The position numbers were made by a program, and so were the translations under genes. DNA of 64,000 bases from Macrostomum lignano. Its lineage: Eukaryota. Below the pieces are notes generated by a model. The model did not search any database and was not told the DNA's origin. It saw only the letters and a program-made list of their open reading frames with translations. Shown here one piece after another: positions 5,576 through 43,369 of the stretch; position 1 is the first letter of the stretch; every line of letters starts with the position of its first letter. Location of the stretch: contig NIVC01000616.1 in NCBI GenBank assembly GCA_002269645.1, positions 124,001-188,000 on the forward strand. Direction: 5' to 3'.

Positions 5576-8300
<2,725 letters not shown>

Positions 8301-21700: not shown

Positions 21701-24700
21701 AGTGGCGGCAATTTGAGCCAAACTCCTCTGATGACCATCGCGATGCTCTTTCCAGTCGGTCATTTCAGAGGTCACTTTTTGGATCAAATGAAGGTTGCCG
21801 GATGCCACAGCCCAGCTAATGGTGCCCTTGGCAGTCGGCTCGTCATCGGCTATTAGCTGTGCACCTCGCTTGACCAGCCAGTCTGCGATGTGCTGGTGAC
21901 CGCGTTGCACAGCCAGGTGGATGATGCAGTCGGGCAGCGCGGGATCTTCGGCGTTCTGGTGCAGAAAATTGGCGACCTCCTCGTGCCCGTTGAGCACTGC
22001 GAGCTGAAAGGGCGTCAGTCCTTGGGCATTCAGCTTCCTAAAACAGTCGGGACAGGTCTCATGAATGCGCTTGAGAATGTTTAAGTTTCCATGCATTGCG
22101 GCATAGTGAGCGCTGTTGCATTTATTGCTGCAGGTCGCAGCTTCTTTGAAGCCTTTTAGTAGCAGAAGTTTAAACACTGAGAGGTTGCCAATGGCTGCGG
22201 CAAGTTGCAGGGGCGACAGTGTGCCAGAAGGCTCAGCGGCATCTGGTTGAGCAGCTATCTGGCAGTGATCGAACAGCCACTGAACCAAGCTCAACTTGCT
22301 TTTCATCACTGCCACGTGCAGTGGTGTGCGGCCTTCAGAGTTTCTGATGTCCGTGCGGCAGTTCATGGCGAACAGCTCGGCGGCCATGTCCAGTCTTCCT
22401 GTCATGAGTGCACAGTGGAACGCCGTGTTCCCCTGAGCATCCTGTTTGTCTACAATGTCAGCGAGGAAGGCGCATCTCGAGTTCCTTCTTAGAGACCGCA
22501 ACAGTCGAATGTTCCAAGTTCGAACTGCGTGGTGGAGAATAGTTGCTCCCTCGTTGTCAATTTTTTCATCTAAATGTAAGCCTTTATTCAAAAGAAAGTC
22601 CAGGTGCTTGATGTCCATGTGCTTGAAAATTTGCTCCATCTTGAGCACACTGGCTACGTGCCTCATGCTCAATTGAGCTTCCCTTGCAGCCAGAATATCC
22701 ATGATCTTCACCGAGTTCAGTGCCGCCGCCAATGAGTAAACTGACAGCCCGAGCTTGTTCTCGGCGAGTGCGTCCGCCCCTCGATCAAGCAGAAGCGCGG
22801 CCGCCTTCTCGTTTCCGAATCGAATCGCGCTGAAAAGTGGCGTTTCACCTTCATTGTCTTTAAGGTCAATAATTTCTGACAGACCCTTAGAAAGTAGTAA
22901 TCGAATGATCTCCTTGCTTCCACCGGCAGCCGCAAAGTGATGCGCGCTTTTGCCATCTTTATTGGTTGCTTTTACATCCAGTCCGGGTGCTTCAATCAAG
23001 TCTTTCAGGGCTTTAATTGCGGCGTCTCTTGTGACGAATCCCTGTTGCAGATCAGATTTTACGCTGGAATCCGGGACGTCATTCCCGTACATTTCGAGTG
23101 GGGGCATCAGTTTTTGCTGGTTATTTGAATGCTCCCTGGACTCAGGGTTTTGCAGCTTGGATGTGCATTTCTTGCCGCAAAGTATGAGAAGGGCATTGTT
23201 GCCCTCCAGATTGACTTCCGATGCCCTGGCTCCAGCCTCAAGTAACAGGGGAATCAGTCTTACGTGGCCATTTTTCACAGCAACAATCAGGGCGTTGTCG
23301 CCCAGCGAATTCTTGTAGTTCAGGTGCACTCCTTGCTCAAGCAGAAACTTCACTATGCCTTCGTTCCCATTGGCGCACGCGATAGTGAGGCAGTTTTCAC
23401 GTGATTTTGTTCGACTTCTTAGGGAAACTCGGACATTGGCGCTTTGCGTTTTCTTGAGAATTTCCAGACTTCCGGATTGACACGCCAGGTGAGCAACGGT
23501 GCGATCTTCGTGGTCCACTGTTTCATCGATTCTGCCATGGTTGCTCTGAAGGATATTCAGGATGGATTCGCAGCCAAGCACAACGCTTAGCATGACAGGC
23601 GAAGTTCCAGAGTCATCCAGTGCATTTGGATCGCCAACCCCCTGATCGAAAAGAAAGCGAATGGCCGCCTCGTTCTTGCCCTGGACGGCATAGTGGAGAA
23701 CAGTTTTCAGTGCATAGTCGGTGACAGAAAATGAGCACTTAATATTGTGCAGAAACATCAGGAACTCGCGGTCTTGCTTTTCAGCCGCCAACATAACTGG
23801 AACAACGCCGTTCCAATCCGGCTGATTAAGTTTGGCGGCATTGTCGTGAAGAAGCTTTATCAGGTTCAAAGATCCTGACTGACAGGCGAAGTAAGCCGGC
23901 GTCTTGCCATCGTGATCAACTGCATTCACGTCGGCACCTTTCTTAATCAGGAACCTGGCCATGTCAAACTTGTTGCTCGAGCAGGCCAGCATAAGTGGCG
24001 TGACGCCAGCGCTGTCCTCCTGGTCCATGACGCAGTCGAACAGGGACAGGCACTGGACGATTTTACGGCTGTCCGGTCAGAAACTCCAAAATAGCCAATG
24101 AATTTTTCGTGGCCTTCAGCGCCTCTAGAAGAAGAGAATTTCCGTCGTGGTCCACCGTCTGCAGATCGGCTCCTTTTTCATGCAAGTACTTGACGATGTC
24201 AAGCTCCCCTTTGGAAACAGCGTAATTCATAGCAGTTTTCCCGAATCTGTCCTTGTGGTCAACCATGCACATTTTCGACTGGCCTGTCAGGAGTTTTATA
24301 GCATCGAACGCACCATTCTGAACGGCAATGATCAGTGGCGTCATGCCGTTAATATCCGGCTCGTCGAGGCAAACTTTTCGTTGTAGGAGAAACTGCAGCA
24401 GCGCCACGTTGTTTTCTCTGACAGCGTAGAAGGCCACAGTGTGCCCGTGGCTGTCTTTCCTGTCAAGTCGGAATTTTTTGTCTGCTAAAAACCGAACCAT
24501 CGACAGCGATTTGTTCCGCGCGGCGCAAAGGATGGCCGTCTCTCCCAGCCGATCAGGGGTGTCCAGATTAGCGCCCCGCTCTCCGAGCAGCATCAGTATT
24601 TCTTCCTGCTTGCTGGCAGCCGCTCTCAGCGCCGGCGTTACGCCGCGAATATTTTGGACATTCATATTGCATTTCTGGTCAATTAGAAACTCCAGGGCTT

Positions 24701-25832
24701 GAATTGGACCTTTCTGGCTGACTGCCAATAAAGGCGTCTCCTCGGTCCTAAGACCTGGTCTGTCAAGTTCAACGGCCTTGTCCGCGAGAAACTTCAGAAA
24801 CTCGAGCACATCGTTTTGCCTGAATGATGCCGCCATCAAGCTGAGCTCTCCCATCTTTCCATGCCCTTCCAGTGAACATTTTTGCTCGACTAGATACTTC
24901 AGCATCTCAATTGGGCCATGAGCAACTGCCAGCTGAGCAGGGGTGAAATTTTGCTCCGCTCGGTCGAAAATCGGAGCCTCCTTCTCTCGGAGAAGCTCTA
25001 AGATTTCGAAATTCCCGGCTTGAATGGCCACCTTGATGCACTCTGTGTTTTGCTTCACATCGCATCCGTTGTCAAGCATGTACTTCACGGCATCGTAAAA
25101 ACCGCTCCGGATTGCGCAGCAAAGTGGGCTGTCTTCATCAGACGGAACTTTGCCATTGAAATTCACGTTAAAGTACTGCAGCATCTGCGTGTGGCCGCAG
25201 CGGGCCGCTTTGGATGCCAAGCTCAGTTTGGTAGCGTAGGATCCGTCACAACTTCTCTCTATCATAAAGCAGACCACATGGATCCAGTTTTTCTTCACAG
25301 CTTTTTCAAGAATGCCGGCTATGGGCTGTTCATCAAGCTGGTGGATGCACGATTGCTTGTCTTCTAACTTTTTAGCAATTTCAGTGTGGCCAAAGTACAG
25401 CGCGTAATACACAGCCGTCAGACCCTCGCTAGTCTTCTTTTTCACGTCAATTTCTTTGCCGAGAAGCTGGTCCACGATGATTTCACTGCCTACTTGAGCG
25501 GCACACATCAGGGGAGTCAGACCCGCCTTGTCGCATTTGTCCAGATCTGCGCCCTTGTTGATCAGAGTGCCGACCAAGTCGTTGTGGCCGGCCAGGGCTG
25601 CCAGGTGCACTCCAGACTGGCCATCGTCATCTGTGCAGTTGACATCGATGCCTTTCTGCAGAGCTTTGTTCACTGAGTGCCAGTCTCCTGATAGGATTGC
25701 TGCAAAGAAGCTGCTCTTCTCCGCCTCTGCTTTCCGCTCAGCTTCCCGGCCGGTACTTGGCAGACACTGCTTGGCCGGCAGCAGAAACTTCTCTAGCATT
25801 TGGCGCAATTTTTTTCTTATTGTCTTATTGAC
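18792..25832 (-). CDS. Very large ankyrin-repeat protein (about 1700 aa if repaired) with one internal frameshift; 5' end unresolved
   Basis: ANK ORFs 24063-25808 and 21029-24028 lie in frames offset by one base with no room for an intron. Inferred 3' exons: donor GG|GTGAGT at 21032; exon 20768-20613 (TTTCAG acceptor, AG|GTAAG donor, EPAIETELILRDIE..DDDR); last exon 18912-18792 (SSYMGPFRCSK..LAS*). All are phase-compatible. Possible acceptor ACAG before 25832. Confidence 0.65.
18987..19704. mobile_element. MITE-like element with about 21-bp terminal inverted repeats
   Basis: CCCAGGTCGGCACCATATAGT (18987-19007) and ACTATATGGTGCCCGACCTGGG (19683-19704). AT-rich interior with TAATCTTACTAAG repeats in both orientations. 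No clear TSD. Confidence 0.7.
19174..19442. mobile_element. Inner MITE-like element with CAGTAGC termini
   Basis: CAGTAGCAGAATT at 19174 and AAATCCGCTACTG ending at 19442; subterminal G and C runs are complementary. No TSD seen. Confidence 0.55.
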
Positions 25833-25885
25833 CTGTCGTTGTAACCAGAGTTGGGAGCTTTTAATAAATGTACCGATTTTTCAGT

Positions 25886-26575
25886 GTTCTCTCATGACCG
25901 CTTTAATTTCTCTCATGACCGCTTTAATTTCTCTCATGACCGCTTTAATTTCTCTCATGACCGTTTGATTTCTCTCATGACCGCATCAATCTATTTCATA
26001 ACCGCATCAATCTCTCTCATGACAGCATCAATCTCTCTCAGAACCGCATCAATCTATTTCATAACCGCATCAATCTCTCTAATGACAGCATCAATCTCTC
26101 TCAGAACCGCATCAATCTCTCTAATGGCTGCTGCATCAATCTCTCTCATGACAGCATCAATCTCTCTCATGACAGCATCAATCTCTCTCATGACAGCATC
26201 AATCTCTCTCATGACAGCATCAATCTCTCTCAGAACCGCATCAATCTCTCTCATGACAGCATCAATCTCTCTCATGACAGCATCAATCTCTCTCAGAACC
26301 GCATCAATCTCTCTCATGACAGCATCAATCTCTCTCAGAACCGCATCAATCTCTCTCATGACAGCATCAATCTCTCTCATGACAGCATCAATCTCTTTCA
26401 TGACAGCATCAATCTCTCTCATGACAGCATCAATCTCTCTCAGAACCGCATCAATCTCTCTCATGACAGCATCAATCTCTCTCAGAACCGCATCAATCTC
26501 TCTCATGACAGCATCAATCTCTCTCATGACAGCATCAATCTCTCTCATAGACGCATCAGTCTCTCTCAGCACCAC
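25886..26575 (-). repeat. 21-bp minisatellite (about 32 units) encoding heptad (MREIDAV)n on the minus strand
   Basis: Unit GCATCAATCTCTCTCATGACA. ORF 26054-26605; two units carry GAG>TAG and one unit is 20 bp. Confidence 0.9.
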
Positions 26576-27543
26576 ATCAAGCTCTCGATTTTGTAGCTCA
26601 TTCAAACTCTCATCACAAGCATTTCCCTTTCTATATACCTTACAGGCTAGATAGAGTACAGTAAATCTTATCTACTTAAAAATGAATAACTGTACTAATA
26701 GGCAAAATGAACTGTAGTTCTTACCAAGCTTGATGAATAGAATTAGCCACTAGCAACTCATTGTACAGCCTTTATACCCTCACTAGAGTCTCGCAAAATT
26801 GATAGTCAAATCAGATAAACCGGCTTAAAACTTTCTAAATAGATTAAAAAGGCGTTGTCAAAAACACCAGGGTTTTATCCGCTGTGGAAAAAAGAGTTAC
26901 GAAGTTCCACTTTGTAGGCAGTTGGCAATGTACGCAGCAATGTACGGCCGCGGGTGTAAATGTTCATAAGGGACAAGGGACAAACTGGAGCTGTAAATGC
27001 TTCTATTTATAGCTCCGCACGTTCTGCTTTTTGAGGCGCTCATTTAGCGAATAAAAAGTTGCAGTTGAAATTACGATAGTAAAATGTATAGCTCTGCTTG
27101 TGTACGTTCAGCTTGCAATGTGCATTCCAATGTTTACACTTAACTTACTAGTTCATCTTTCTGTACTTGCCAGTTCATCATTATAATTTGCGTTTAACCC
27201 ATTTCCTGAAAATCTAACACTTTAACAGGAATCACTACAACTACTCGCACTTCGGTAATCAGTCGAATCTTAGCTTATGACTCTGAATCAGCCGCGGAAG
27301 AAAATAAAATGACAAGTAGGACAGGACCGAAAACTAGAACGCGACACCTTGCAGGCGTGATTTATTAAGTGTTATTAGTATTGTTTTGTGCAAGTAAAAT
27401 CATGAAAAGTACATCTCAGCACTGCTTGCGTGTCAACACTAACCCATTTCGAACGACAGCAACGAATGAAATTCTGTACGTTTTATACCCATCAAAGAAA
27501 ACTAGCTGGTTTTCCTTCAGTTCTCACCGTTATGCTCGGCGGT

Positions 27544-30370
27544 TCAGGGCTTCCGACAGGCCTGGATTTTGGCGATCGCCCTGCCAATGCCAGGCGAGAG
27601 CCACACGTTGAGCAGCCTCTGACGGAACTCGCGCTCCGGCATGCCGGTCCTGATTCGCCTTCGCCGTAATAAAAACGTTTCGACGCCCCACGTAGTCAGG
27701 GCCACAATCCCGAAAACGATGAGAAAAATGAGGGTCACTGTGGCCCCGACCAGCGCTGCGTTATTCAATGTTCGCAGCACCTTTACCACAATTTCCCCGA
27801 TTCCGTTAGGCAGCATGACGAGCTGCGATCCTCGCGTCATCAGCTGAAGTGAGGCTCGTCTGCCATAAATCAGGAAGTTTACAAAGTGCTCAGTTGTTGT
27901 TGAACAGATCGTAGCTCTCAAAACCTTGGAACTCTCTGAATCTTGAATCGATCTTCTCCCAGTCCGGCTCACAGTTGTGCACAACCTTCTCAATGCTGTT
28001 GGCTGTTGCAATTCTAAGAAATCCGCGGAACTCCTTGAACCCTTTGTCCTCGCGCTCAGCTCCGAACTCGTACGTCACGCCTTGTCTGCTACACTGAGCT
28101 GAATCCCAGTCGGTGATCACAAAGTGGACATCTTTCTCAACTCCATGCACTCGGCGCTTCAGCACGATGTGATCCCACCGTCTCAGGTCCGACTTCGTCA
28201 CTCCGTCTTCGAACTGCAGACTCTCGCAGCTATCTTTGATTTTTGTTAATTCGGTCCCGAACAGACTCTGCACGCCACGTAGTCCTTCGCAAGACCAGAC
28301 CATCTTCAGCCCGAAGCAGAAGTCCTTGTCAGTGACCTTGCTGCCTCCTTTGCCAACTGAGCCTTTGAAGTCATCGTCCGAGTTAAGAAATGTGCAATCC
28401 TGAATCTCATCCAGACGAGACGCACTCGGCTCGACATCCAAGCTGGGGTGCTGCACTCTGCGGATGATATCTGTGCTGCTAAAGTCCAGAGGCTCCATCC
28501 GCACTTTCCGGTATGGAGCATTGTTCTCGTAGATCCGAACTCGCACGATGTCCGAACAGCCCGAGACCTTTTGAATGTCTCTCAGAATGGCATCGTGCGT
28601 GTAAAATCTCGCAAACTTTTGATACTTGATGTGACATTTACCGAACTCCAGCAGCTGAGCGGCTGACTCGATAGGCACACAACACTGCTCCCTGTTGCTG
28701 GCGTGCCTGATGCTGCACCAACGAGCAAAGTCTCTCGAGCTGTTCCACTGTAGATCAAACTGCCGTTCACCGATCCGCGACTTTGCTCTGGCAACCACTT
28801 GGTCAGGAGAAAAGTGAATTTCAGCAGGCACTTTGTAATCGACTTCAAAGAGTTCATCTTCTACTTTAAAGCTTACACTCCTTTCAATGATTTCGTGCGA
28901 GTTCTCGCACGGGTTTACTCTGAATTCAGTGTACTCATACATTGCTAAGTCTAATTCATACTCGCCAGTAGCCTCTGAAATAACTTTTGGATTTTCTAGA
29001 ATGGCTGCTCTGGTGTACATCCCGCTGTCTTTCTCTTTCTTGAAGCTGACTATGCTGCCTCTCTTAAGGCAGCTTGGCTTTTTCACCCTAGTGCGGGTAT
29101 CAATTGGTCGTTTTGAACCGCCTCCGTAGAGAGAACAGTTCTCTTTGACGTCATTGTGAACTACAAGTTGTGCTTCAGATTCCCTGTTACCAATGACGTA
29201 CTTGATCTCCCGGTGTTCACTGACATTCTCAGCGTCATCAATGCTGTACTGCAGAGTTTCCAGTTTAATCTGCTGAGAGGAGGAGCCCAGCTGCACTCTG
29301 AGAACAGCGCGATGTGTTTTTCCTGAGCAGATTATGTCACCAGGACGAAGGTCTCTCGCTTTTACCTGCTCAATTCGGTTGCTAGTTGGTGACGCTCTTC
29401 CATTGAGCAGACTCTGCAACCAATACGTCTCATCTTCTGATTGCGAGCATGAGACCACAATCTGCGCAACGTCTTTGCTCGATTTTGGGGACCTGAACGC
29501 CAGGTCTTTAATCACGTTTGCCTTCTCAGCGAGTCTTGCCTGATAGGTTTGAGGCAGTTGGGATCTTCTGGTCTTCAGAGCTGTGTCAGCTTTGAGTTCT
29601 TCGCCCGACTTGTTAATGCTTTGGAATTTCGAATTTTTCCAGTCTTCCTCTGCGACAAGAACTGTGAGCAAGTGCCCGGTGTCATCCAGGTCCGTGACTT
29701 TCTTCACCTCTCCGTGAATCGTGCTCCAGCCGAATTTCAAATTCATGTGGTCATTCTCCTTCACCTGGTGAATCGGATGCTGATCAGACAGGTAGATCGG
29801 AACTAGAACTGTATCCAGATGAGTAGAGTTGATCGTCTTGCACCATCTCGCGAACTGTCCCGAGTTACTCGCCATTCTGCCATAGTTCCGGTCGTTCAGT
29901 CGGCTCTCGGCTCTCTGAAGCACCACCTCGGGTGGGTAGCAGCAGCTCTTGGAGAACAGCAGGAGTCTGCAGTAGCGACGGCCTGACAGCAGAAATTCCT
30001 CTCTCACGACAGTCTTCACCGCTCTGTGCCACCCGTAGTGAAACGCAGTGGCAACAGTCTTGTCGGCTGTTGTTGTGACTCGTTCGATCAGGATTGTGCG
30101 GGGCATGCCGTTATACCTGATCTCCAGCACGTCCGCAGGCTTCAGTTGGTGTAGGTTGTACTCTGTGATGCTCACCCAGCCTCGCTTTATGGCTTCATCA
30201 TCTACCACAACATCGGCGTCGGTAGCCAAAGAAATAAACTCATTTTCGTTCAAAAAACCGTGGTTGCACAGCAGCGACTCGAGGTCGGTTCCGAGGTTGT
30301 GCAGAACAGGTAGGACATCGCTAGCATCGAAGGCTGCGCTAGTGTGAGAGGCTGGCAGTTTGTGCTGCAT
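27544..30370 (-). pseudogene. Multi-LRAT (permuted NlpC/P60) protein, copy 1, frameshifted at the catalytic Cys (about 942 aa if repaired)
   Basis: ORF 27890-30370 ends DLFNNN*; the tail EHFVNFLIYGRR..hydrophobic segment..CRKP continues in the frame of ORF 27544-28011. Relative to copy 2 (AAC TGT GAG CAC) it reads AAC TGA GCA C, a 2-nt deletion. May be an assembly error. Confidence 0.75.
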
Positions 30371-31735
30371 CTGTTGAGTAATAATTTATGCCGGATTTCA
30401 TGCATTCGTATGGACAAAGAAATATTATAAATCGATTTTTTAGATTTAAAGGGACTTATTGAATCGTGAAAAGTAATTTTTTTAATCCATTCCAGGAACA
30501 GTTCTACATTAACTTTCGGCAGCAAGCTTGAAGCTAAAGCAAGGCTGGTGTGAGCAGCAGGGTATTCCACAATCTCAGGTGCATACATTTGGCTGCATCT
30601 AACTTTACTGACTAACCAAAGTGTTGAATTAGCAAATCAGCAAAACAAAATCTCAAACACAATTGCTGACAGTGCTGCTTGATTCCACTCGTATCTGATC
30701 GTGAGGGGGACACAAATATTCAAATAATAGTATTCTCGATCATATTCACGTTTTGACTATACTATGACTTTCGATTGCAGCTTAATATAGAGTAAATATA
30801 CGAGCTAAGTTAAGACTTACTGATGACAAAAATATTTGCCAAATATCCGCGTTCAAAAAAGAAGAAAAGGTGTCTTCGCTTCCGAAATTTCAGCAGTCAC
30901 TTTTCCTAATCATTTCAAATTGTTTTGAATATCGTTTTTATAGTCTTAGTGGAGATTAGCTTATCAAATTACGAAATAAAAACTCACTCTCAACTCCTTG
31001 AAAAAGAAGCCTTCTTGATTTTTTTTCGAAACACGACGTCATACGAGCGTATCCAAGTACAGAAGGCGGTTTCATTTTAATTTGCTACTATTTTATCTCA
31101 GAAACTATTGATTTAACGCACCTTTGGGCGTCCGCATGACATGCTTGATAGCTGGCTTGCGGCTGAATACTTTTGCATTTATCAGTTAGCTAGCGAGATT
31201 TTAATCTCTGGTTTTAGCAATTCGGTTTTCGTTACGGTAGATTGGGTACAGTTCTCTCCACAAATGCAAATGCAGATATGAAAACAAATTGAATGTGCTC
31301 GCACCCAAGGTGGATTGAAAGGCTATTCAATGAGTTAAAAATGATTGACTTACTCAATAATTTCAGTTAGTCAACGAACACTAACCACTGAAAAGCAGCT
31401 AAGAGCAAGCAAAGTCACGATTCTTTACAAGTAACTGCATGGCCCATGCCATGTTGTTTTATTCTGTTCTCTTCTTAAGATCATATGCATTTTGTACAAT
31501 TTTCCATAACCTAACTCATTTGCTCGTTTATATTTTCTAAATAATCAGAGTGCTCTTCAATTGGCAGAGTGACATTATCAGAGTTCTTCCAGAGAGACAT
31601 CGTTAGAGTGCTTAATATAGCCTGAGGCAAGATTGAAGTAGGAGTTTTCACATTTGTGTGATAGCATTTAAATACTCCTAGGGAAATCTGAGAGTCATTT
31701 TCTAAGAAATATCAGAACGACACAAAAGAAAGTAT

Positions 31736-32526
31736 TAGAGTGCTCCCAGAGTGACATTGCGGTAGAATCAGATGCTTCTAGAGTAACATTGCAGTAGAAT
31801 CAGATGCTCCCAGAGTGACATTGCAGTAGAATCAGATGCTCCCAGAGTGACATTGCAGTAGAATCAGATGCTCCCAGAGTGACATTGCAGTAGAATCAGA
31901 TGCTCCCAGAGTGACATTGCAGTAGAATCAGATGCTCCCAGAGTGACATTGCAGTAGAATCAGATGCTTCTAGAGTGACATTGCAGTAGAATCAGATGCT
32001 CCCAGAGTGACATTGCAGTAGAATCAGATGCTTCTAGAGTGACATTGCAGTAGAATCAGATGCTCCCAGAGTGACATTGCAGTAGAATCAGATGCTCCCA
32101 GAGTGACATTGCAGTAGAATCAGATGCTCCGAGAGTGACATTGCAGTAGAATCAGATGCTCCCAGAGTGACATTGCAGTAGAATCAGAGTGCTCCCAGAG
32201 TGACATTTTAGTAGAATCAGATGCTCCCAGAGTGACATTGCAGTAGAATCAGAGTGCTCCCAGAGTGACATTGCAGTAGAATCAGATGCTTCTATAGTGA
32301 CATTGCAGTAGAATCAGATGCTCCCAGAGTGACATTGCAGTAGAATCAGATGCTCCCAGAGTGACATTGTAGTAGAATCAGATGCTCCCAGAGTGACATT
32401 GCAGTAGAATCAGATGCTCCCAGAGTGACATTGCAGTAGAATCAGATGCTCCCAGAGTGACATTGCAGTAGAATCAGATGCTCCCAGAGTGACATTGCAG
32501 TAGACTCAGATGCTCCCAGAGTGACT
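31736..32526. repeat. 32-bp minisatellite (about 24 copies)
   Basis: Unit CAGAGTGACATTGCAGTAGAATCAGATGCTCC; starts at 31811 and 31843. Confidence 0.95.
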
Positions 32527-33855
32527 TGAAATATGAATGCTAAACCTTAATAAAATTTGAAATTTAAATGAATTAAATAATAGAAGAGGAAGAGATGACA
32601 CCAATGGTTTGATGCGGTGCTATGCTGAATAACAAAAGTTCCACAAAGAGCAACACTCTGAGTCGAGACGTTGATGGAACAGGAAGAGCAGACAGGCAGA
32701 GAAAGCCAAGCGGATGCGCACGCACAGCTCTGCATCGCTAAAGCCTATAATAGTTAATAAGTCTTTCCGTTTTTGTGCTCTAGATCGCAGCACAGAATAT
32801 AGCCTGGATATTGCTTCACTGAACAAATAAAGACCACTCCAGATTCTGGAAAGTGCCGCAAATAAATATAAAAAATTAGATTTTCAAAATTTATTCAAGT
32901 GCACCATTTGCCTGACTAAGCAATATTGTACAATTGAATAGCAAAGATAAAGTTTCATGGGATAGCTAAGTAAGCAGCAGCGCAAAGCAGCAAGGTACCA
33001 TAGGCAAAAATTTGAAACTTTATGACTCAAAAACATAATGACACAAAAACCGATTACCAGAACACACCGAAAAACATACGAGCTAACTTGACAATGGATA
33101 AATACTGAAAATATTAAAAATGTAAAGAATAATATCGTAATTAAAGGAAGTGGGAAATATCAATTAGCTGATTTTTTACTTTTACCCCTTCATTCTTTTA
33201 AACTTCTTTCAAAAGCCTGATATTTAGCCCAGTTTTGATTGTCTTGACCAAATGTGACTGAGAAATCAGTACAGGTGACTGCATGTTTAAGTGTAATAAA
33301 TCCTTAAATTTCGCCATTAGAAAGCAATACGTATTAGTGCTCAATAGATCCTGGCTAATTCTTACCTGACCCCACTAAAATAGGAGTTTGCTTATTTTCT
33401 CCATGCAAAATTGGGTGAATATTTTCTACTATATGCTCTATATGCTCTACTATAGTTAGCGGAACGGCCGGAGGGAGAGAGCAAAGGCAACGATTGGAGA
33501 GCACGAGCAAAACATCCTACCGCCCTGTATGGGCAACTTACGAGACACGAGTATTTTTTGGAAAGCATTCGAAAAACTATTTAGAAGAGTAAAAGTTGAA
33601 CGAAGCGAAAGGAAAAAAGAAGTTGCAAAGATTGCGAGAAAGGGGGGCTAAAAGCAGAAAAAGAACGCACGCAAGCTGGCGAGGCGGGCACAACGCACGG
33701 GGCTAAAAAGGCCCCACAGACACCCACCCCCGCCCCGGCGGCGGCGCACCCACCCCCGGGCCAAGCACCCCCAAACACGGGAGACGACAAGCCCCCCCCC
33801 GGCCCCGCTAACAGCGATTGGCCAGCCAATCTACACTTGGAGCCTAGAAAAGTCT

Positions 33856-34116
33856 GGGTTGCAGCCTAGTCGTCAGAGTTGGCGGACTCACGACTTGAAG
33901 GTCGGGGGTTCGATTCCCGATTCGACTCGGAACAGTTTGTGTTTTTGAGCAAGACACTTAACTCTGCATTGCTTCAGTTCCCCCCGTGGAAAAATGGGTA
34001 CCAACATTAGCTGGGGGAATTGAGGGTGTGGCGACCCCCCCCCCCCAGTCCTTGGACTGAACAGCCGTATGCAGCCTTCAGATGCTGTCGGTTGCGCATA
34101 TTTGGGCGGGTGTACT
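33856..34116 (+). mobile_element. CORE-like tRNA-SINE (copy 2)
   Basis: B-box-like GGTTCGATTCCC; AGCAAGACACTTAACTCTGCATTGCTTCAG and CCCAGTCCTTGGACTGAACAGCCG shared with copy 1. Confidence 0.75.
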
Positions 34117-34265
34117 CAATAGTAGTTATTATTATAGTGAATGCATTTAGTCCAAAAACCAAGTCTTAATAAGCAAAGCATGATACGCTGGCAAAAGTCT
34201 GTCGCAGCAATAGAATCCAGTCTGCGACCAACCTATAGCATGTAAAATATTTCAGTTCAAACAAG

Positions 34266-37100
34266 TCAGGGATTTCGGCAAGCTTTAAGATAGGCTATCG
34301 CCATTCCGGGCACTGGCGTGAGCCAAGCGTTCAGGATTCGCTGTCGAAATTCATTAACTGGCATGCCAGTTCTGATCCGCCTCCGGTGCAGTAAAACTGT
34401 TTCCACTCCGCTGGATATAACGGCCACAACAGAAGCTACCCAACTCACAACGAAAGTAACCCTTCCAAGCTTTGAGCCCGCAGCAAGGACCCTAGAAAAT
34501 ACTTCCACGAATTCTATTACCCGAGATGATATCGAGCTGATTCCACTGGGTATTCTCACGAGGATTGTGCCTCTCGACATCAGCTGAAGAGAAGTGCGTC
34601 TGCCATAAATCAGGAAGTTTACAAAGTGCTCACAGTTGTTGTTGAACAGATCGTAGCTCTCAACACCTTGGAACTCTCTGAATCTTGCATCGATCTTCTC
34701 CCAGTCCGGCTCACAGTTGTGAACAACCTTCTCAATGCTGTTGGCTGTTGCAATTCTAAGAAATCCGTTGAACTCCTTGAACCCTTTGTCCTCGCGCTCA
34801 GCTCCGAACTCGTACGTCACGCCTTGTCTGCTACACTGAGCTGGATCCCAGTCGGTGATCACAAAGTGGACATCTTTCTCAACTCCATGCACTCGGCGCT
34901 TCAACACGATGTGATCCCACCGTCTCAGGTCCGACTTCGTCACTCCGTCTTCGAACTGCAGACTCTCGCAGCTATCTTTGATTTTTGTTAATTCGGTCCC
35001 GAACAGACTCTGCACGCCACGTAGTCCTTCGCGAGACCAGACCGTCCTCAGCCAGAAGCAGAAGTCCTTGTCAGTGACCTTGCTGCCTCCTTTGCCAACT
35101 GAGCCTTTGAAGTCATCGTCCGAGTTAAGAAACGTGCAGTCCTGAATCTCATCCAGACGAGACGCACTCGGCTCGACATCCAAGCTGGGGTGCTGCACTC
35201 TGCGGATGATATCTGTGCTGCTAAAGTCCAGAGGCTCCATCCGCACTTTCCGGTATGGAGCATTGTTCTCGTAGATCCGAACTCGCACGATGTCCGAACA
35301 GCCGTCTGTCCTATGCGACTCCATCAATAAGACGTCATGAGTGTACACACCAAGCGACTTTGTGAACTTGATGTGACCTTTACCGAAATCCAGCAGCTGA
35401 GCGGCTGACTCGATAGGCACACAACACTGCTCCCTGTTGCTGGCGTGCCTGATGCTGCACCAACGAGCAAAGTCTTTCGAGCTGTTCCACTGTAGATCAA
35501 ACTGCCGTTCACCGATCCGCGACTTCGCCCTCGAAACCACTTGGTCAGGAGGAAAGTGACGTTCAGCAGGCACCTTGTAACTGACTTCAAAGAGTTCATC
35601 TTCTACTTTAAAGCTTACACTCCTTCGAACGATTTCGTGCGAGGTTTTCCACGGGTTTACTCTGAATTCAGTGTACTCATACATTGCTAAGTCTAATTCA
35701 TACTCGCCAGTAGCCTCTGAAATAACTTTCGGATTTTCTAGAACGACTGCTCTGGTGTACATCCCGCTGTCTTTCTTTTTCTTGAAGCTGACTATGCTGC
35801 CTCTCTTAAGGCAGCTTGGCTTTTTCACCCTAGTATAGATATCAAATGGTCGTTTTGAACCGCCTCCGTAGAGAGAACAGTTCTCTTTGACGTCATTGTG
35901 AACTACAAGTTTGGCTTCAGATTCCCTGTTACCAATGATGTACTTGATCTCCCGGTGTTCACTGACATTCTCAGCGTCATCAATGCTGTACTGCAGAGTT
36001 TCCAGTTTAATCTGCTGAGAAGAGGAGCCCAGCTGCACTCTGAGAACAGCGCGATGTGTTTTTCCTGAGCAGATTATGTCACCAGGACGAAGGTCTCTCG
36101 CTTTTACCTGCTCAATTCGGTTGCTATTTGGTGATGCTCTTCCATTGAGCAGACTCTGCAACCAATACGTCTCATCTTCTGATTGCGAGCATGAGACCAC
36201 AATCTGCGCAACGTCTTTGCTCGACTTTGGTGACCTGAACGCCAGGTCTTTAATCACGTTTGCCTTCTCAGCGAGTCTTGCCTGATAGGTTTGAGGCAGT
36301 TGGGATCTTCTGCTCTTCAGAACTGTGTCAGCATTGAATTCTTCGCCCGACTTGTTAATGCTTTGGACTTTAGACTTTTTCCAGTCGTCCTCTGCGACAA
36401 GAACTGTGAGCAAGTTCCCGGTGTCATCTAGGTCCTTGACTTCTTTCACCTCTCCGTGAATCGTGCTCCAGCCGAATTTCAAATTCATGTGGTCATTCTC
36501 CTTCACCTGGTGAATCGGATGCTGATCAGACAGGTAGATCGGAACTAGAACTGTATCCAGATGAGTAGAGTCGATCGTCTTACACCATCTCGCGAACTGT
36601 CCCGAGTTGCTCTGCATTCTGTCATAGTTCCGGTCGTTCAGTCGGCTCTCGGCTCTCTGAAGCACCACCTCGGATGGGTAGCAGCAGCTCTTGGAGAACA
36701 GCAGGAGTCTGCAGTAGCGACGGCCTGACAGCAGAAATTCCTCTCTCACGACAGTCTTCACCGCTCTGTGCCACCCGTAGTGAAACGCAGTGGCAACAGT
36801 CTTGTCGGCTGTTGTTGTGACTCTTTCGATCAGGATTGTGTGGGGCATGCCGTTATACCTGATCTCCAGCACATCCGCAGGCTTCAGTTGGTGCATATTG
36901 TCGTCATCTAGCCTTACCCAGCCTCGAATTTTATCTTCATCATTTAGTTCAATTTCGGTGTCGGTGCCAGCGCCAGCTGTTCTGTTCGAGTCGCTCTGGG
37001 GTAACAATTGGATTTCGCGCTCGTCCATGACCAGATCGTCCAGCGGCTCCTCGATGTAGGCGTCTTCGCCACCCCGTAGAGCTGCCAGTTCTTGTTCCAT
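34266..37100 (-). CDS. Multi-LRAT (permuted NlpC/P60) protein, copy 2, intact, about 944 aa
   Basis: Open frame. About six LRAT-like modules (L.P.D...H...RA.SRL....Y....N[S/C]..FARWC). The last has DVHFVI...YDLFNNNCEHF (Cys codon 34632-34634), followed by a hydrophobic C-terminal segment. Likely start is MEQEL at 37100, just after a CAG acceptor. Confidence 0.85.
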   Translation of the reverse strand: MEQELAALRGGEDAYIEEPLDDLVMDEREIQLLPQSDSNRTAGAGTDTEIELNDEDKIRGWVRLDDDNMHQLKPADVLEIRYNGMPHTILIERVTTTADKTVATAFHYGWHRAVKTVVREEFLLSGRRYCRLLLFSKSCCYPSEVVLQRAESRLNDRNYDRMQSNSGQFARWCKTIDSTHLDTVLVPIYLSDQHPIHQVKENDHMNLKFGWSTIHGEVKEVKDLDDTGNLLTVLVAEDDWKKSKVQSINKSGEEFNADTVLKSRRSQLPQTYQARLAEKANVIKDLAFRSPKSSKDVAQIVVSCSQSEDETYWLQSLLNGRASPNSNRIEQVKARDLRPGDIICSGKTHRAVLRVQLGSSSQQIKLETLQYSIDDAENVSEHREIKYIIGNRESEAKLVVHNDVKENCSLYGGGSKRPFDIYTRVKKPSCLKRGSIVSFKKKKDSGMYTRAVVLENPKVISEATGEYELDLAMYEYTEFRVNPWKTSHEIVRRSVSFKVEDELFEVSYKVPAERHFPPDQVVSRAKSRIGERQFDLQWNSSKDFARWCSIRHASNREQCCVPIESAAQLLDFGKGHIKFTKSLGVYTHDVLLMESHRTDGCSDIVRVRIYENNAPYRKVRMEPLDFSSTDIIRRVQHPSLDVEPSASRLDEIQDCTFLNSDDDFKGSVGKGGSKVTDKDFCFWLRTVWSREGLRGVQSLFGTELTKIKDSCESLQFEDGVTKSDLRRWDHIVLKRRVHGVEKDVHFVITDWDPAQCSRQGVTYEFGAEREDKGFKEFNGFLRIATANSIEKVVHNCEPDWEKIDARFREFQGVESYDLFNNNCEHFVNFLIYGRRTSLQLMSRGTILVRIPSGISSISSRVIEFVEVFSRVLAAGSKLGRVTFVVSWVASVVAVISSGVETVLLHRRRIRTGMPVNEFRQRILNAWLTPVPGMAIAYLKACRNP

Positions 37101-37588
37101 CTGTGTCGTCAAGGTAAAGTTCAAAAGTAGAATTCTTTCAAGAAGCATCAGAAATCTGTTTAAAATCATTGAGAACCCTAAAAGGCTGTACTTGCGTGAC
37201 AATATGGTAGCCGGTGCTTCATCTACATGTAGCTGCTTTGTTGCATACGTGAGCTGCTTGAAAACGTGAGAAAAGCTTTTCCTTCTTTGGACAGGGCGAC
37301 TTAGTGAATGAGAAAAGTTTAAATTTGCACAGTTTTTTAGTGCATAATTTATCTACTAACAAAACAGTACCTCGACTGTCCGTTGCTTTGCATAACAAGT
37401 AGGAATTAAAGTTCCCTTGTTGGGAATAATAGCTTCGAAATATGCGTTTGCACAATGCGGTGCTTCTCTTATGACACAAAAATATTTTAGTAGATCCGCT
37501 ATCTGGGCTAGGAAAAATCAATAAGTGTTTTTCATCCAGATAGTATTTGTCATTTACTATTCAATAGATGTGACCTTGGATTTCGGGA

Positions 37589-37790
37589 GGCAGGGCAGCT
37601 CGGTGGTTGATAAGTCGGACTCTCGTGCCCACGACCCCAGGTTCGATTCCGTTCGCGGCCACATCCATTGTGGATTCACACTCATGAGAGCCAACCCTTG
37701 CGCACAGAGACTGTACATCCATGATAACAAGAAAGTCAGAGCCCTGAGTTAGCGTGTACATGAGCACCCTTCTACTGCAGGCATAGTACA
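37589..37790 (+). mobile_element. Second tRNA-derived SINE-like sequence
   Basis: A-box-like GCTCGGTGGTTG and B-box GGTTCGATTCC without a closed acceptor stem; 3' extent uncertain. Confidence 0.45.
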
Positions 37791-38368
37791 GTACAGTATT
37801 TGCGCACTTGTTTGTGCTCATGCTCAGGAATCAGTGGACTCCTGACGAATTCAGATTTTCGATAACGCTAGGCATACAGAAAATTGCGTTACGAGTATGG
37901 GGGATATCAAGGCTGAGAGGCACTTCGAGCACTCACCGAATTAGCGAATACAGTCGAATTCAAAGCAGAATTTCTGAATCGAAAACTTCCTACCAGTTCA
38001 GCACTGGCAAAAGAAATAAAGTAGCTCGACTTAATATCCTTGAGGTGTGGGCGAAAATCCTTAAACTGCTTGCGCTTTTGTATTGGTTGGAGCAAAGCAG
38101 CTGGCTTTAGTTCCTTCTTAAAGGAATAATCATTTATGCGTCATATCTATTCAAGGAAAAAAATAAGGAACCTCTTAGTTCCTTATTTCAAAGATCTAAA
38201 ACTTTTCTCACTTCCTGATACTAATATTACGATTAGCTAAGTAAACAAGAAAGTTCTCCTTAAGAGTGCTAATAATAAACCTCGATCGTATTTTGGAGCT
38301 GATGATAATACTACTTAATAATACTATAGAAAATAACTACTTAAAGAAATTATGAGAATCAAACAAAT

Positions 38369-38376
38369 AAAAAAAA
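38369..38376 (-). terminator. Pol III T-run terminator of tRNA-Asn
   Basis: T8 on the minus strand about 10 nt after the tRNA 3' end. Confidence 0.7.
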
Positions 38377-38385
38377 CTATTACTT

Positions 38386-38402
38386 CGCCCCCGGGTGGGC
38401 TC

Positions 38403-38439
<37 letters not shown>

Positions 38440-38459
38440 GCCGATTGCGCCACGGAGGC
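38386..38459 (-). tRNA. tRNA-Asn(GTT): tRNA-Asn (anticodon GTT)
   Basis: GCCTCCGTGGCGCAATCGGCTAGCGCGTTCGGCTGTTAACCGAAAGGTTGGTGGTTCGAGCCCACCCGGGGGCG; 74 nt, 7-bp acceptor stem, canonical D, anticodon and T arms. Confidence 0.97.
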
Positions 38460-39663
38460 TCCCGAAGGGGGGTCGTTTGGTAATCAATTTTCCGTGTGTG
38501 CTCAAATTCTTTGAGCTCATTTGAATGCGTACGTTCTGAGAAATTCACGCATTTGAACTTGCATGTACATAATTACATAGTTACACTTGCATTCTATTTT
38601 CTAGTCGAGATAAGGGGTGTATTTCACTGCAACCTACAGTTCACTGCCTGTCTCTGCATTGCTGCACACTCCTAGCTCTCACCTATTGCTTCAGCTATGG
38701 TACTGTAGCACATTTTAAACCATATCCCATAGGACTCTTTTCGACGCCTCGTTGTAGGATGCTTTTCCTGTGTCATTTCTTTTCCCGATTCCCATGAAAA
38801 ACTACACCTGTTGAAGAAAACCCTGATAATATTTCAGATCTTGCCAGCAAGAGCACCGGTTTCACGGACTCAAGCGGGACTAAGCACTGCTTGCTTGAGT
38901 TCCCATGGAAAAATGCATGAGAGCAAAATCCTCATTAGCTGCGGAATGCTTCCAGCAACTCAAGTTTCTGTCACAAAAATCTGACTAGTAAACGCTTAAT
39001 TGCGCACCTGCTGCGCTGCTGTTCCTTTGTTTAACGAAGACTCTTTTTACCTCTCTTACTTGCCAATGCAAGCACGTTACCCCTGGAGGCAGCCGCAACC
39101 CAAAAGCTCTAAGAATAGCTGAAGAAAACGAAGCACTAGAAATCTTATGGAATGCATCAATTATTAACAATAGCTTTTCCTGCGGTCTAATCAAGCTTTG
39201 AGCCAGTTAGACTTGCCCTTCCACGAGAAAATACCTTCCCCCTTGCGTGACAGTCAAAGTTTTGGTTGTCAATCGATGAATAATCAATCAGACAATGAGT
39301 CAATGCTATGCAGATGCCGAATCTCTTCTGAAGCTGAACTGACGTGGCAAAAATTTATTGTTTGCGTATTATAATAAAACCGAACACGCAGATTCGAGAA
39401 GAGGACAGGACAGTAGAGGGCTCAGAAGGCAAATAAAACCTGTCAGGACGTGACTTGATAGACGTTGAAGGCTTCATAGAGTCTGCATTACTAAGTTAAT
39501 TTGAACCGACTTCGTGTCTTTAAATTTCGCTCCCAGAAAGTAATTAGAAATATTGACTGGTGGTGTACTATGCTATGCTTATTATTCCGACTATTTAGTA
39601 GTCAGTTGTCTTTAAAAACGATGCATATCGGTCATCATATTTTGCTCGTGCAGTTTCCATTAG

Positions 39664-41052
39664 TCAAGGGACGAGCGGCCTCAACAAAAACACACAAAAA
39701 ATGGCTACGGTGATCAAGCAGCCGATGATAGCCATCAGTCGTTCCAAGGCGACCGCAGCGATCTGCCAGTCCGAGCGTCGCTCTCCGGAAGCCGCCGCGG
39801 GTACCTCATTGGCGTCGAATTTCCTGACCTCAGTGTCGCAGCTTTGCGTCTCTTCCTGCTGCGGCTCCGTTCTGCCGTCCGATCGCCGACTGCAGAGCAG
39901 CAGACGTCCGAAGATTTTCACGAAGACAAAGTGGAGACACGACGGCATCGGCTGGGACTCCGGAGCGAAGTGGAATCGAATGACAACGGAGGTGAGCAGC
40001 AGAGACACAGTCGAAAGCACCATGGCCGCCGTGATGAAGGAGGCCACGGCCGGCATCGACTGCGACTTGGGCAGCAGGCCGTCCAGCAGCAGCAGAAACA
40101 CAGTGTAGCTCAGCATGATGGAGATGCCGAAGCTCATCTTCTCGCCGGACTCCACAGGCACAAAGAACACCAGTACCTGGAGCAGCGTGAGCAGCAGCAG
40201 GGGAGTCACCACGTTCAGCATATAGTAGGTGGACACTCGCTCGATCTCCACACGCATCACATAGGTTGACAGAGGAATTTTCGGCTGGCCTTTGAAAACT
40301 TCATAGAGACGGTAGCTCGCAAAGGTGCTTATGTTTAGCAGATTCCATTCGTTATTCTCACCAAAACCGGCAACTTCGTTGTACTCCATAGTTGGAGGCA
40401 GCAGAGGATGTCCCTTCTTCAGAGAAATGCTGTCCAGCGCGCGGCCTTGGTCGGAAGCGTACAGCTCCATGTCACAGACATGCCGATCAAACGGAAAGCG
40501 ACTCATGTCGAAGCGGCAGGTGAACTCAAGCTCCTTTACCCAGGCGACTGACATCAGGGACTTGCTGGGCGACACGGATGTAATGTAGGACGGGCACTGA
40601 GGACTCAGCAGCATGTTGTCACCCATGCCGTTGTAGACAAACAAGAGCGGATACCAGGTCTGGCCCATGTCCCAGTCCAACACGGTGACGTTGCCGAACT
40701 TCTCTGGCTCCCAGGTGAGTCGTTCTTCGAACCAATGTGCGTATACTACAACAGAAACTCCAATGCTCTGCTTGGAGCTGTCCACGGACACTATCTGACC
40801 GAGCATTGTCACCAAAGACACATTCAATTTCTGTTTCGGATTCAGAATGGGTCTCAGTGACGGACTAAAGTTCGTGATGTTGCTTTTCAGATACTGCAGC
40901 AATTCGAATTGGAAATCTCTGGCAGCATCTCCAGATTGAAATTCTGTACTTAGGATAGAGACTATCACAAACAAGAACAATATCTTTTGTTGGGATAGCA
41001 TGCTGTTTCTTAATTGAGAACTACCAAACGATAGAATAAGACGGGAATTCAT
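39664..41052 (-). CDS. Cys-loop ligand-gated ion channel, nAChR-like non-alpha subunit
   Basis: Signal-like ILFLFVIVSIL, Cys loop CRFDMSRFPFDRHVC, M1-M3 with GEKMSFGISIML, short M3-M4 loop, M4 IAAVALERLM. No vicinal CC. The real start is likely M at 41001, or a mini-exon 41650-41637 (ATGTTCCTCTATCG|GTAAG) spliced to 41002. Confidence 0.9.
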   Translation of the reverse strand: MNSRLILSFGSSQLRNSMLSQQKILFLFVIVSILSTEFQSGDAARDFQFELLQYLKSNITNFSPSLRPILNPKQKLNVSLVTMLGQIVSVDSSKQSIGVSVVVYAHWFEERLTWEPEKFGNVTVLDWDMGQTWYPLLFVYNGMGDNMLLSPQCPSYITSVSPSKSLMSVAWVKELEFTCRFDMSRFPFDRHVCDMELYASDQGRALDSISLKKGHPLLPPTMEYNEVAGFGENNEWNLLNISTFASYRLYEVFKGQPKIPLSTYVMRVEIERVSTYYMLNVVTPLLLLTLLQVLVFFVPVESGEKMSFGISIMLSYTVFLLLLDGLLPKSQSMPAVASFITAAMVLSTVSLLLTSVVIRFHFAPESQPMPSCLHFVFVKIFGRLLLCSRRSDGRTEPQQEETQSCDTEVRKFDANEVPAAASGERRSDWQIAAVALERLMAIIGCLITVAIFCVFLLRPLVP

Positions 41053-41255: not shown

Positions 41256-41553
<298 letters not shown>

Positions 41554-43369
41554 AAAGAGACTTGTAAGTCTAAGGAATATACGAGCTAACTAAATACTCA
41601 AATAGAATAAATTCAGACCCGATGCGAAGTACTTACCGATAGAGGAACATCGCCGACCTGGTGGAAGAGATTTGACAGCAGATCCTCTAATAAAACAGGG
41701 TCAAGGCATGATGGGTTGACGAGGCTGCGGGATGATGGACTGGGACCAGGGTAGATTCATGTCTGAGACTGGAATTCGAGGCTAAAAGCAGATATTGCTT
41801 TTTGTTTAAATTACAATCAATTGTTAGTTTGTTTTCAGGCCTGCGCTCCCAACCATTCTGCGCCTCCAGTTCGCCCATGAATTCGGTCGACCATACGAAG
41901 GGTTCAAAATTTTGGGAAAATGGTCATATCATTTTCTCAACGTAGCCTCCGACCTGCTGATCCATCAGCAGAGTCGCCACTGGACACTAATATAAAATTT
42001 GATCGAGGTGGACCTTCTCGCTGGACTTCGAAATGAGTAGACTGAAAGAGTGGCCTCTTGAGCTGGTGAAATGGCCACTCTGACCTAAGGGCTGGGAGCT
42101 GAAATCGACGCATAACTGAGTTCAAAGATCCTTAGCGCAATGTTTAATTAACACCGGAGTTTCTTGGAAGCTACCATCTTCAATTCTGACCGCTCAGCGC
42201 AATCGGACGAAAAAATCTCCTATGCAAAATCTTTCGTTTGTTGAGAGTCTCTCAGATCGGCCATGGCTTAACTACTCATAGTTGAGGTCTTTGCTAAATC
42301 CTCGAACGCAGCAGGCCGGGAGTCCCATTTGGTTAACTGGGATTTATTCAAGTGTTCTTCTGCTCAGATGACTGACTGGTGGTGGCTATGGCCTCTAACG
42401 TAATACCTTCATACACAGTGGCGACTCTGTCAGACTCAAAGCTACGAGTACATATATATACCATGCGCGCACATAAAGGCATGCAGCTGTAGCGTTGCTT
42501 GGAGATTACGTCATAATAATGTAACACCAGTAATTGGCGCTCGGACTACCACTAAACTACGATTCTTTTTCATTGCATGTACAATTAATTGTGCAACTGC
42601 AAGAGGCGTAAGCATAGCTATAGCACCCACTTGAAGCCAAAACGTGCCATTATAACATCAATCGGCGACACCATCGGCAGATAAATCTCCAATTAATAGG
42701 GAGACATATTGAAATCCTTTTCCTATATACTAAAAATGAGTTGTTTGTTTGTACGCAATCGATTAGAGAAATCCTATATACTAAAAATGAAATGTCTGTA
42801 ACTAACTAGCTATGCGATAGATTTCAGAAAAAATGGCTCAACCGATTTTCTTCAAACTTGCACCATTCGATCAGAAATTTTCCTGGGACGGTACATGCAT
42901 CTTGGCTAAAAAATTGCTCAATGATAAAGGGATTAAATATTCGAAAAACATGCTTTTTTGCAAAGGTCAAGCAGCTCTTTCGACCTAAAATTCATTGTAA
43001 GAATGCTAGAGAAAAAAACTGACTGGCTGAATTCTGATTGTCATAAAGATTGCATCACAACAAGTTGAAAACAGTGCCGAAGAAATGCACACACGACTTG
43101 ATTAAAATTGCGTAACCAATATTGCTAACTTGAACTGAGACTGATACTGGCTGACTGAGAAATTGATTATGTCATAACTTTTTACCCCAATTGACTTGCT
43201 GTAAGAATTTAATTATAAGGGCCACAATTCATGTACTCCAATTGAAAAGAGATAGCCTAGATACGAACAGACTGGACTGCCAACGTAGCGACCTGGGTTC
43301 GAATCTTAGTAGTGCAAAATAATTTTTTTATAAAACACCTTGAAAACACGAAACTGCTAAACATAAAAA

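Follow-up and report, generated by a model that had tools for sequence, protein, structure and literature searches.

What use a flatworm could have for six serial copies of a domain that stands alone in the known enzymes, and which of these copies could still be catalytic, is the question raised by two tandem paralogous genes, here called A and B, on contig NIVC01000616.1 of Macrostomum lignano (assembly GCA_002269645.1). The window analysed comprises 64,000 nucleotides of this contig (positions 124,001 to 188,000 of the forward strand), and coordinates are given relative to its first letter. The domain is that of the LRAT/PLAAT enzymes, small single-domain proteins with a circularly permuted papain-like (NlpC/P60) fold which function in retinoid storage, the synthesis of N-acyl-phosphatidylethanolamine, the breakdown of organelle membranes and the entry of picornaviruses. 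While these enzymes have about 160-230 amino acids, gene A adds about 650 residues, with five degenerate copies of the domain (M1 to M5), before the putative catalytic domain M6. With moderate confidence, gene A can be read as coding for a membrane-anchored LRAT/PLAAT enzyme in which M6 would be catalytic and the upstream modules are most likely non-catalytic, gene B being its disabled paralog.

Gene A lies in a reading frame that is open throughout positions 34266..37202 of the minus strand (978 codons from a TTG), and the residue numbering used here is that of this 978-amino-acid open reading frame (ORF). Translation probably begins at the ATG of codon 35 (position 37100), just after an acceptor-like site (...cacag, acag). 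The product is 97% identical to UniProt entry A0A1I8H137, a 'LRAT domain-containing protein', and agrees at 951 of 952 residues with that of a second M. lignano contig, a single residue being different. All near-identical database entries are from M. lignano, and an exact look-up of the 944-amino-acid product in assemblies returned no record. All the module ends listed in a preliminary description of this locus are found in gene A in the order stated there, namely NSGQFARWCKT (residues 199-209), KSSKDVAQIV (322-331), a helix-less module (360-450), NSSKDFARWCS (573-583), TDKDFCFWL (711-719) and, after DVHFVI (777-782), NNCEHFVNFL (855-864). Its limits, 27544 and 37100, are also exact, as they correspond to the stop of the out-of-frame tail of gene B and to the likely ATG of gene A, respectively.

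When the modules are mapped onto the canonical LRAT profile, the combination of a histidine with the cysteine of NCEHF is found in M6 only, in agreement with the earlier statement that the last module alone looks active, and M1 to M5 fail at the cysteine position (Ser, none, none, Ser and Asp). M6 has the permuted order of PLAAT1-5 (HRASLS) and LRAT, with His779 on the N-terminal β-strand, Cys857 at the start of the C-terminal NCEHF helix and a predicted hydrophobic anchor after it. Cys857 aligns with Cys113 of PLAAT2/3 and is present, by inspection, in all of 13 aligned family members except gene B and one further paralog (P0008), and Asn856 is conserved in at least 90% of them. In a comparison of the family profile with the PDB, all sequence matches are PLAAT2, PLAAT3, PLAAT4 or a PLAAT3-LRAT chimera, the best being PLAAT2 (4dpz; E = 3.9e-6). 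An NCEHF motif followed by a transmembrane anchor is the signature of PLAAT and LRAT proteins, and hydropathy likewise predicts the hydrophobic tail that had been noticed after the last module: the gene A product has one predicted transmembrane segment (residues ~915-938) about 55 residues past the catalytic helix of M6 (Kyte-Doolittle, 19-residue window, maximum 2.07), and its paralogs have two to three such segments.

With respect to the upstream modules, profiles were cut from an alignment (A1) of 13 full-length family members and compared by hhalign with two reference profiles, built from 52 canonical NCEHF domains (hits from outside Macrostomum) and from 155 modules of the M1 type, respectively, with 100 column-shuffled profiles set against the LRAT profiles as controls. 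Each module profile scores above all its shuffled controls (0/100 reach the observed score; z-scores 6.6-102). These comparisons clearly identify M1, M4 and M6 as LRAT domains. M1 matches the canonical profile with a probability of 99.5% (E = 4e-22, 108 columns, z = 49.5), M4 with 99.3% (E = 9.5e-21) and M6, over its full length of 118 columns, with 97.8% (E = 1e-12), and M1 and M4 match each other with 99.4% (E = 1.4e-21). M5 is probably LRAT-derived, as it matches the canonical profile with 84.3% over 74 columns and the M1-type profile with 70.6% over 110 columns, among them those of the DFC.WL helix (z = 9-10). M2 and M3 appear very degenerate, with N-terminal halves in register with LRAT: M2 matches the canonical profile with 75.5% (z = 11.8) and M3 the M1-type profile with 86.8% over 41 columns (z = 14), both in the β1-β2 hairpin (GD.I...H in M2) only.

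In line with this grading, the gene A protein as a whole exceeds the cut-off of 24.3 bits for Pfam LRAT (PF04970) with 61.9 bits (E = 9e-17) in three matched stretches. A scan of the single modules, as had been proposed, places M6 above this cut-off (29.5 bits, E = 9.7e-7) and M1 (20.9 bits, E = 4.7e-4) and M4 (23.8 bits, E = 5.7e-5) just below it, and finds no Pfam match in M2, M3 or M5. A self-BLAST of the gene A protein shows no internal repeats because the modules are too diverged, and profile methods alone reveal them. Each module holds invariant residues, and six other divergent M. lignano clusters align with gene A end to end, which speaks for constraint on the array as a whole. The count of about six LRAT modules in the preliminary description is hence firm for M1, M4 and M6 and probable for M5, but for M2 and M3 it extends to the β1-β2 hairpin only. 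The module that it called truncated is M3, which has no helical half.

Gene B is 94.5% identical to gene A over 2408 nucleotides and carries its 2-nucleotide deletion precisely within the cysteine codon of NCEHF (AAC TGT GAG in gene A, AAC--TGA G in gene B), with EHFVNFL and the transmembrane tail persisting beyond the resulting stop in a different frame (ORF 27544..28011). An assembly error was rejected as its source: the frameshift is real because a second, independent M. lignano contig, NIVC01001020.1, encodes the identical truncated 826-amino-acid gene B together with a near-identical gene A, while differing from the window by 0.54% (99.46% identity across positions 25857-40391). A rescuing intron was rejected too, as no GT...AG was seen around the deletion. 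The tandem genes were recognised correctly beforehand, but the list of module ends fits gene A only, gene B being frameshifted.

The two genes also have different histories in different parts. Their bodies (residues 95-856) show a synonymous divergence (dS) of 0.081 and a nonsynonymous divergence (dN) of 0.047 (ratio 0.58), whereas in the frame-corrected tails past the deletion dS is saturated (>2) at a dN of 0.355 (dN/dS ~0.15), and the N-terminal 60-70 residues are unrelated as well. The low ratio in the tail of gene B, which is still an open frame, indicates purifying selection in comparison with gene A, and the low dS of the bodies next to the saturated dS of the tails suggests that the paralogs are old and that their bodies were homogenised by gene conversion. 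The simplest reading is a history of three steps, in which an old duplication would have given two functional genes whose tails evolved apart, a recent gene conversion would have made their bodies alike, and the later loss of TG in a TGTG run would have removed the cysteine, the remaining catalytic helix and the anchor of gene B. At present gene B may be a pseudogene of recent origin; at most, it would give a soluble array devoid of enzyme activity. The coordinates of both genes and the residue states of the modules are summarised in the table.

Table. Features of the tandem LRAT-type genes and residue states of the six modules of gene A (window coordinates)
Feature	Position	Strand	β2 His	β3 His	Cys position	Description
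Genes A and B	27544-37202	(-)				Two tandem paralogs; two long reading frames (ORF list)
Gene A	34266..37100	(-)				Intact single-exon coding sequence, 944 amino acids from ATG; six LRAT-derived modules and C-terminal transmembrane tail
M1 (95-215)	36558..36920	(-)	H121	H141	S200	Ser-type LRAT module; NSGQF instead of NCEHF
M2 (216-345)	36168..36557	(-)	H249	not mapped	no Cys	Degenerate; LRAT-like β1-β2 hairpin (DHMNLKF...H249), two helices ending KSSKDVAQIV
M3 (360-450)	35853..36125	(-)	H383	not mapped	no helix	Half-module; five β-strands (PGDIIC...H383); without the two C-terminal helices or nucleophile position
M4 (451-592)	35427..35852	(-)	R484	E510	S575	Ser-type LRAT module; WNSSKDFARWC; both His replaced
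M5 (593-725)	35028..35426	(-)	H622	Y644	D712	Probable LRAT-derived module; Asp at Cys position (TDKDFCFWL)
M6 (745-880)	34563..34970	(-)	H779	T796 or Y797	C857	Canonical LRAT/PLAAT-type domain; DVHFVI, NNCEHFVNFL
Predicted catalytic Cys857 codon of gene A (TGT)	34632..34634	(-)			C857	A/B repeat spacing shifts exactly at this codon (6742 to 6740)
Predicted transmembrane segment of gene A (~915-938)	34389..34460	(-)				VTFVVSWVASVVAVISSGVETVLL; Kyte-Doolittle hydropathy
Gene B	27890..30370	(-)	R replaces H121			Paralog, 826 amino acids, M1 to M6, ends ...FNNN* (ORF list)
Premature TGA stop of gene B	27890..27892	(-)				2-nucleotide (TG) deletion within the Cys codon (A/B alignment)
Gene B C-terminus remnant	27544..27891	(-)				Out of frame: EHFVNFLIYGRR...; one strong transmembrane segment, conserved ...ACRKP end

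With respect to the distribution of this architecture, an exhaustive HMMER search found 92 relatives, and a word-indexed protein search with the gene A protein and the family alignment recovered only the paralog in the window. Full-length six-module relatives occur in M. lignano only, where they form the six other divergent clusters mentioned above at 22-40% identity. One paralog (P0002) has nine modules by duplication of the M1-M2-M3 block, and two shorter ones (P0102, P0021) consist of the M5-M6 pair only. On contig NIVC01004522.1 (locus L002; 4761-8899 and 10128-13079) two such genes again stand in tandem. The upstream one has nine modules (M1M2M3-M1M2M3-M4M5M6), its frame being broken near 6104-6209 by an intron or a frameshift, and the other is a six-module gene (P0004). 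Outside M. lignano, proteins that combine an NCEHF domain with an array of Ser-type modules were found in Mytilus, Potamilus, Sinanodonta, Mercenaria and Ruditapes, in the hemichordate Ptychodera and in Branchiostoma, with 2-9 modules per protein and, in Branchiostoma, several NCEHF domains per protein. In the examples closest to gene A (Potamilus KAK3603616.1, Mytilus XP_076105740.1, Ptychodera flava and Branchiostoma belcheri) an NCEHF domain is accompanied by 1-8 Ser-type modules homologous to M1 and M4. The hidden Markov model (HMM) of M1 reaches domain E-values down to 1e-29 in the bivalve, Ptychodera and Branchiostoma proteins and finds up to eight strong copies in a single bivalve protein, e.g., KAK3603616.1. 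By their HMMs, modules of the M2, M3 and M5 types are found essentially in M. lignano only.

The preliminary description did not recognise the serial architecture, which nevertheless recurs in proteins on record for M. lignano, bivalves, Ptychodera and Branchiostoma. It is widespread but uncharacterised, as the multi-LRAT relatives are throughout named "hypothetical", "uncharacterized" or, automatically, "LRAT domain-containing", and literature searches on tandem LRAT domains, on LRAT in Macrostomum and on LRAT in Mytilus found nothing relevant. The order of the parts differs between the groups. In bivalves (P0009-P0052) the active-type NCEHF domain comes first, followed by one to three predicted transmembrane segments and the Ser-type array, whereas M. 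lignano has the array at the front and the active-type domain with its anchor at the end. Common to the arrays, and shared with PLAAT and LRAT, is a predicted membrane segment immediately behind the putative active domain. Because one to three segments intervene, the bivalve array could, depending on their number, face the side of the membrane opposite to the active domain.

Several observations weigh against the reading of gene A as an anchored enzyme with inert upstream modules. The position of the third residue of the catalytic triad, H35 in PLAAT3, is occupied in M6 by Thr796 or Tyr797, the alignment of this strand being of moderate confidence, and M6 differs from the PLAAT enzymes in this respect. 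The dN/dS of 0.58 between the bodies of genes A and B would be compatible with relaxed constraint or with diversifying selection. The fold of the modules, moreover, is backed by sequence profiles alone. An AlphaFold2 model of the full gene A protein, computed from the 13-sequence alignment, has a mean predicted local distance difference test score (pLDDT) of 59, with blocks of 10 residues mostly at 60-88 in M1-M4 and mostly below 50 in M5 and M6, and with a poor tail. In this model the secondary-structure order of M1, M2 and M4 agrees with the β1-β5, α2, α3 pattern (in M1 at a pLDDT of ~63-88, most blocks being at 73-88), and DSSP assigns strands only to M3. A Foldseek search of the full low-confidence model against the PDB, however, gave no match at E <= 0.001 and retrieved no PLAAT, even for M1 and M4. 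The confidence of the model is moderate for M1-M4 and poor for M5 and M6, and the negative fold search carries little weight against an LRAT fold because the firmly assigned M1 and M4 retrieved no PLAAT either.

The remaining point against inert upstream modules concerns M1 and M4, which by profile comparison are members of a conserved Ser-for-Cys type of LRAT module that is abundant outside flatworms. Among 99 M1-type modules from 60 representative non-Macrostomum proteins with a median pairwise identity of 28%, 85 keep the combination His-His-Ser, the motif being N-R-S-S-H-F where canonical domains have N-C-E-H-F. H141, S200 and H121 all fall within the seven columns of highest conservation, and HMMER places the serine exactly on Cys113 of PLAAT2/3. 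A dead domain in free decay would hardly show such conservation, and all three residues are retained in M1 of gene A. Because 85 of the 99 modules elsewhere keep His-His-Ser, "dead" is unproven for the Ser type, and the earlier designation of M1 to M5 as five pseudo-enzymes, while correct in that they have no Cys nucleophile, is too strong for M1 and M4. The type appears strongly conserved and is absent from the literature searched.

It might therefore be asked whether the Ser-type modules, i.e. M1 of gene A and those of the bivalve arrays, are functional, either as enzymes of the permuted papain-like fold with a serine nucleophile or as covalent carriers of acyl groups, conserved in flatworms, bivalves and deuterostome invertebrates, so that a protein would have more than one active site. 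Against the conservation just described stands the drift of the serine within M. lignano, where the position is Ala in M1 of most paralogs and D, G or R in M4 of some, and the loss of both histidines in M4 of gene A. Also, Cys-to-Ser mutants of PLAAT3 and LRAT are the customary dead controls. M1 is in the state of the vertebrate pseudo-enzymes LRATD1/LRATD2 (FAM84A/FAM84B), which have both histidines and no cysteine and are thought to be non-catalytic, FAM84B/LRATD2 being stated to be without phospholipase A/acyltransferase activity (PMC7140883), whereas M4 of gene A is not in this state. Unlike gene A, LRATD1 and LRATD2 contain just one LRAT domain, to which no active domain is joined. Altogether, active Ser-type modules appear unlikely; if they existed, the arrays would be multi-site lipid-remodelling machines around one Cys-type domain, and not one enzyme with dead copies.

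An alternative of similarly low probability takes M2 and M3, and possibly other β-halves, as SH3-type barrel reader domains of the Tudor, chromo or Agenet kind inserted between the LRAT modules. It draws on the top local Foldseek matches of the full model, which are exclusively Tudor/chromo barrels (SETDB1, MRG15/MRG2 and AGDP3), on similar matches of a model of M2 alone, on the missing Pfam LRAT match of M2 and M3, and on the automatic naming of a fragment of gene A in UniProt as 'Agenet-like domain-containing protein'. None of these barrel matches is significant, though, the best E-value being 0.06 and the template-modelling score at most 0.66 on ~65 columns, with a probability of 0.9 at E-values of 0.25-0.3 for local matches of the full model, and the M2 model is itself of low confidence (pLDDT 56.6, compared with 77-88 for M2 within the full model). 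Pfam scans of gene A, whole and per module, found no Tudor, Agenet or chromo match. Moreover, M2 and M3 are in register with the GD.I...H β1-β2 hairpin of LRAT (z = 7.6-14 over shuffles), their HMMs cross-match M1-type modules of bivalve proteins, and M2 has α2/α3-like helices with an SSKD..A..[IV] end parallel to that of M4. Degenerate LRAT modules hence remain the preferred reading for M2 and M3.

Less probable still is that M6 is a peptidase or isopeptidase of the PPPDE/DeSI or NlpC/P60 kind acting on proteins and not on lipids, as the superfamily to which this fold belongs includes peptidases and as a weak match to Peptidase_C97 (PF05903) exists at the NCEHF helix (E = 0.034 with the whole protein, 0.012 with M6). 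At 14.4 bits this match is below the cut-off of 29.2, is limited to ~20 residues and overlaps with the stronger LRAT match; PPPDE was rejected as the primary reading on this ground, and the PLAAT/LRAT signature and PDB matches given above point to lipids as well. Of the two kinships considered at the outset, LRAT/PLAAT and PPPDE, the former is the better fit. That the locus is a decaying duplicate pair without a selected function, for which the frameshift of gene B, the body ratio and a region rich in minisatellites might speak, is highly improbable in view of the uninterrupted 2.8-kb frame of gene A with its 951 of 952 identical residues, the alignment of the family over its whole length (22-40% identity), in which NCEHF is conserved and many residues are invariant, and the tail dN/dS of ~0.15.

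The window is animal DNA, and the pair is surrounded by many minisatellites and by genes of other families. A 32-nucleotide minisatellite (31741-32525, 24.5 copies, 95% matches) lies between the two LRAT genes, and a 21-nucleotide minisatellite (25888-26586, 33 copies), which gives rise to long artefactual ORFs (REIDAVM repeats) in both strands, lies just downstream of gene B; contig NIVC01001020.1 terminates inside the latter. Further arrays are found at 43359-45062 (23 nucleotides, 74 copies), 46979-49877 (24/48 nucleotides, 61-94 copies) and 51265-55626 (23 nucleotides, 192 copies), besides an (ACT)84 tract at 41278-41530 and an AG-rich tract at 7313-7882; these large satellite arrays account for the biased composition and for the long ORFs at 47008-49615 that could not be annotated. 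About 1.2 kb upstream of gene A there is a tRNA-Asn (GTT) gene (38386-38459, minus strand), and a tRNA-like stretch at ~37590-37680, with a B-box-like GGTTCGATTCC on the plus strand and no ARAGORN call, is possibly a fragment of a tRNA-derived short interspersed element. Three long ankyrin-repeat ORFs (Pfam Ank_2, E-values down to 1e-130) are located at 12929-15061 on the plus strand and at 21029-24028 and 24063-25808 on the minus strand, of which the latter two, adjacent on the same strand, may form one gene. A single-exon ORF of 462 amino acids (39664-41052, minus strand) codes for a Cys-loop ligand-gated ion channel (Neur_chan_LBD and Neur_chan_memb). On the plus strand, an ORF of 465 amino acids (16021-17418) has a weak Mab-21_C match (E = 8e-4), and one of 224 amino acids (59053-59727), which overlaps a 42-nucleotide tandem repeat, matches the HKD motif of PLD.

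If gene A codes for an anchored enzyme, M6 would use His779 and Cys857 of NCEHF while being held at the membrane by the C-terminal segment. By analogy with PLAAT1-5 and LRAT, Cys857 would form a thioester acyl-enzyme with an acyl chain of a membrane phospholipid, which M6 would then either hydrolyse, as a phospholipase A1/2, or transfer, as an N- or O-acyltransferase. The five upstream modules would be the product of repeated internal duplication of the same domain and would most likely serve M6 as non-catalytic binding, scaffolding or regulatory units at the membrane. More speculatively, they might bind lipid or protein ligands, keep M6 inhibited or oligomeric, or place it on its target membrane, and the parts of ligand sensor, decoy or auto-inhibitor suggested for them beforehand are likewise conjectural. 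A distant parallel is found in tandem proteins such as the receptor tyrosine phosphatases (D1/D2), whose active domain is joined to inactive versions of itself with a supposed regulatory or scaffolding role. This is no more than an analogy, since they share neither fold nor chemistry with gene A, and a series of five degenerate copies is unusual. It may further be speculated that tandem expansion, gene conversion, a moderately high dN/dS and ankyrin-gene neighbours would fit a fast-evolving role in defence or conflict.

The long serial LRAT arrays of invertebrates represent a new, multi-module architecture of a known enzyme family, which is present in the databases but unstudied. M. lignano is an experimentally tractable animal in which RNA interference works, and with C857, H779, S200, H121 and H141 the residues in question are open to mutational testing. 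Such tests could show in what way a lipid enzyme of the membrane is regulated by its pseudo-enzyme copies, or whether the fold is active with serine in place of cysteine.

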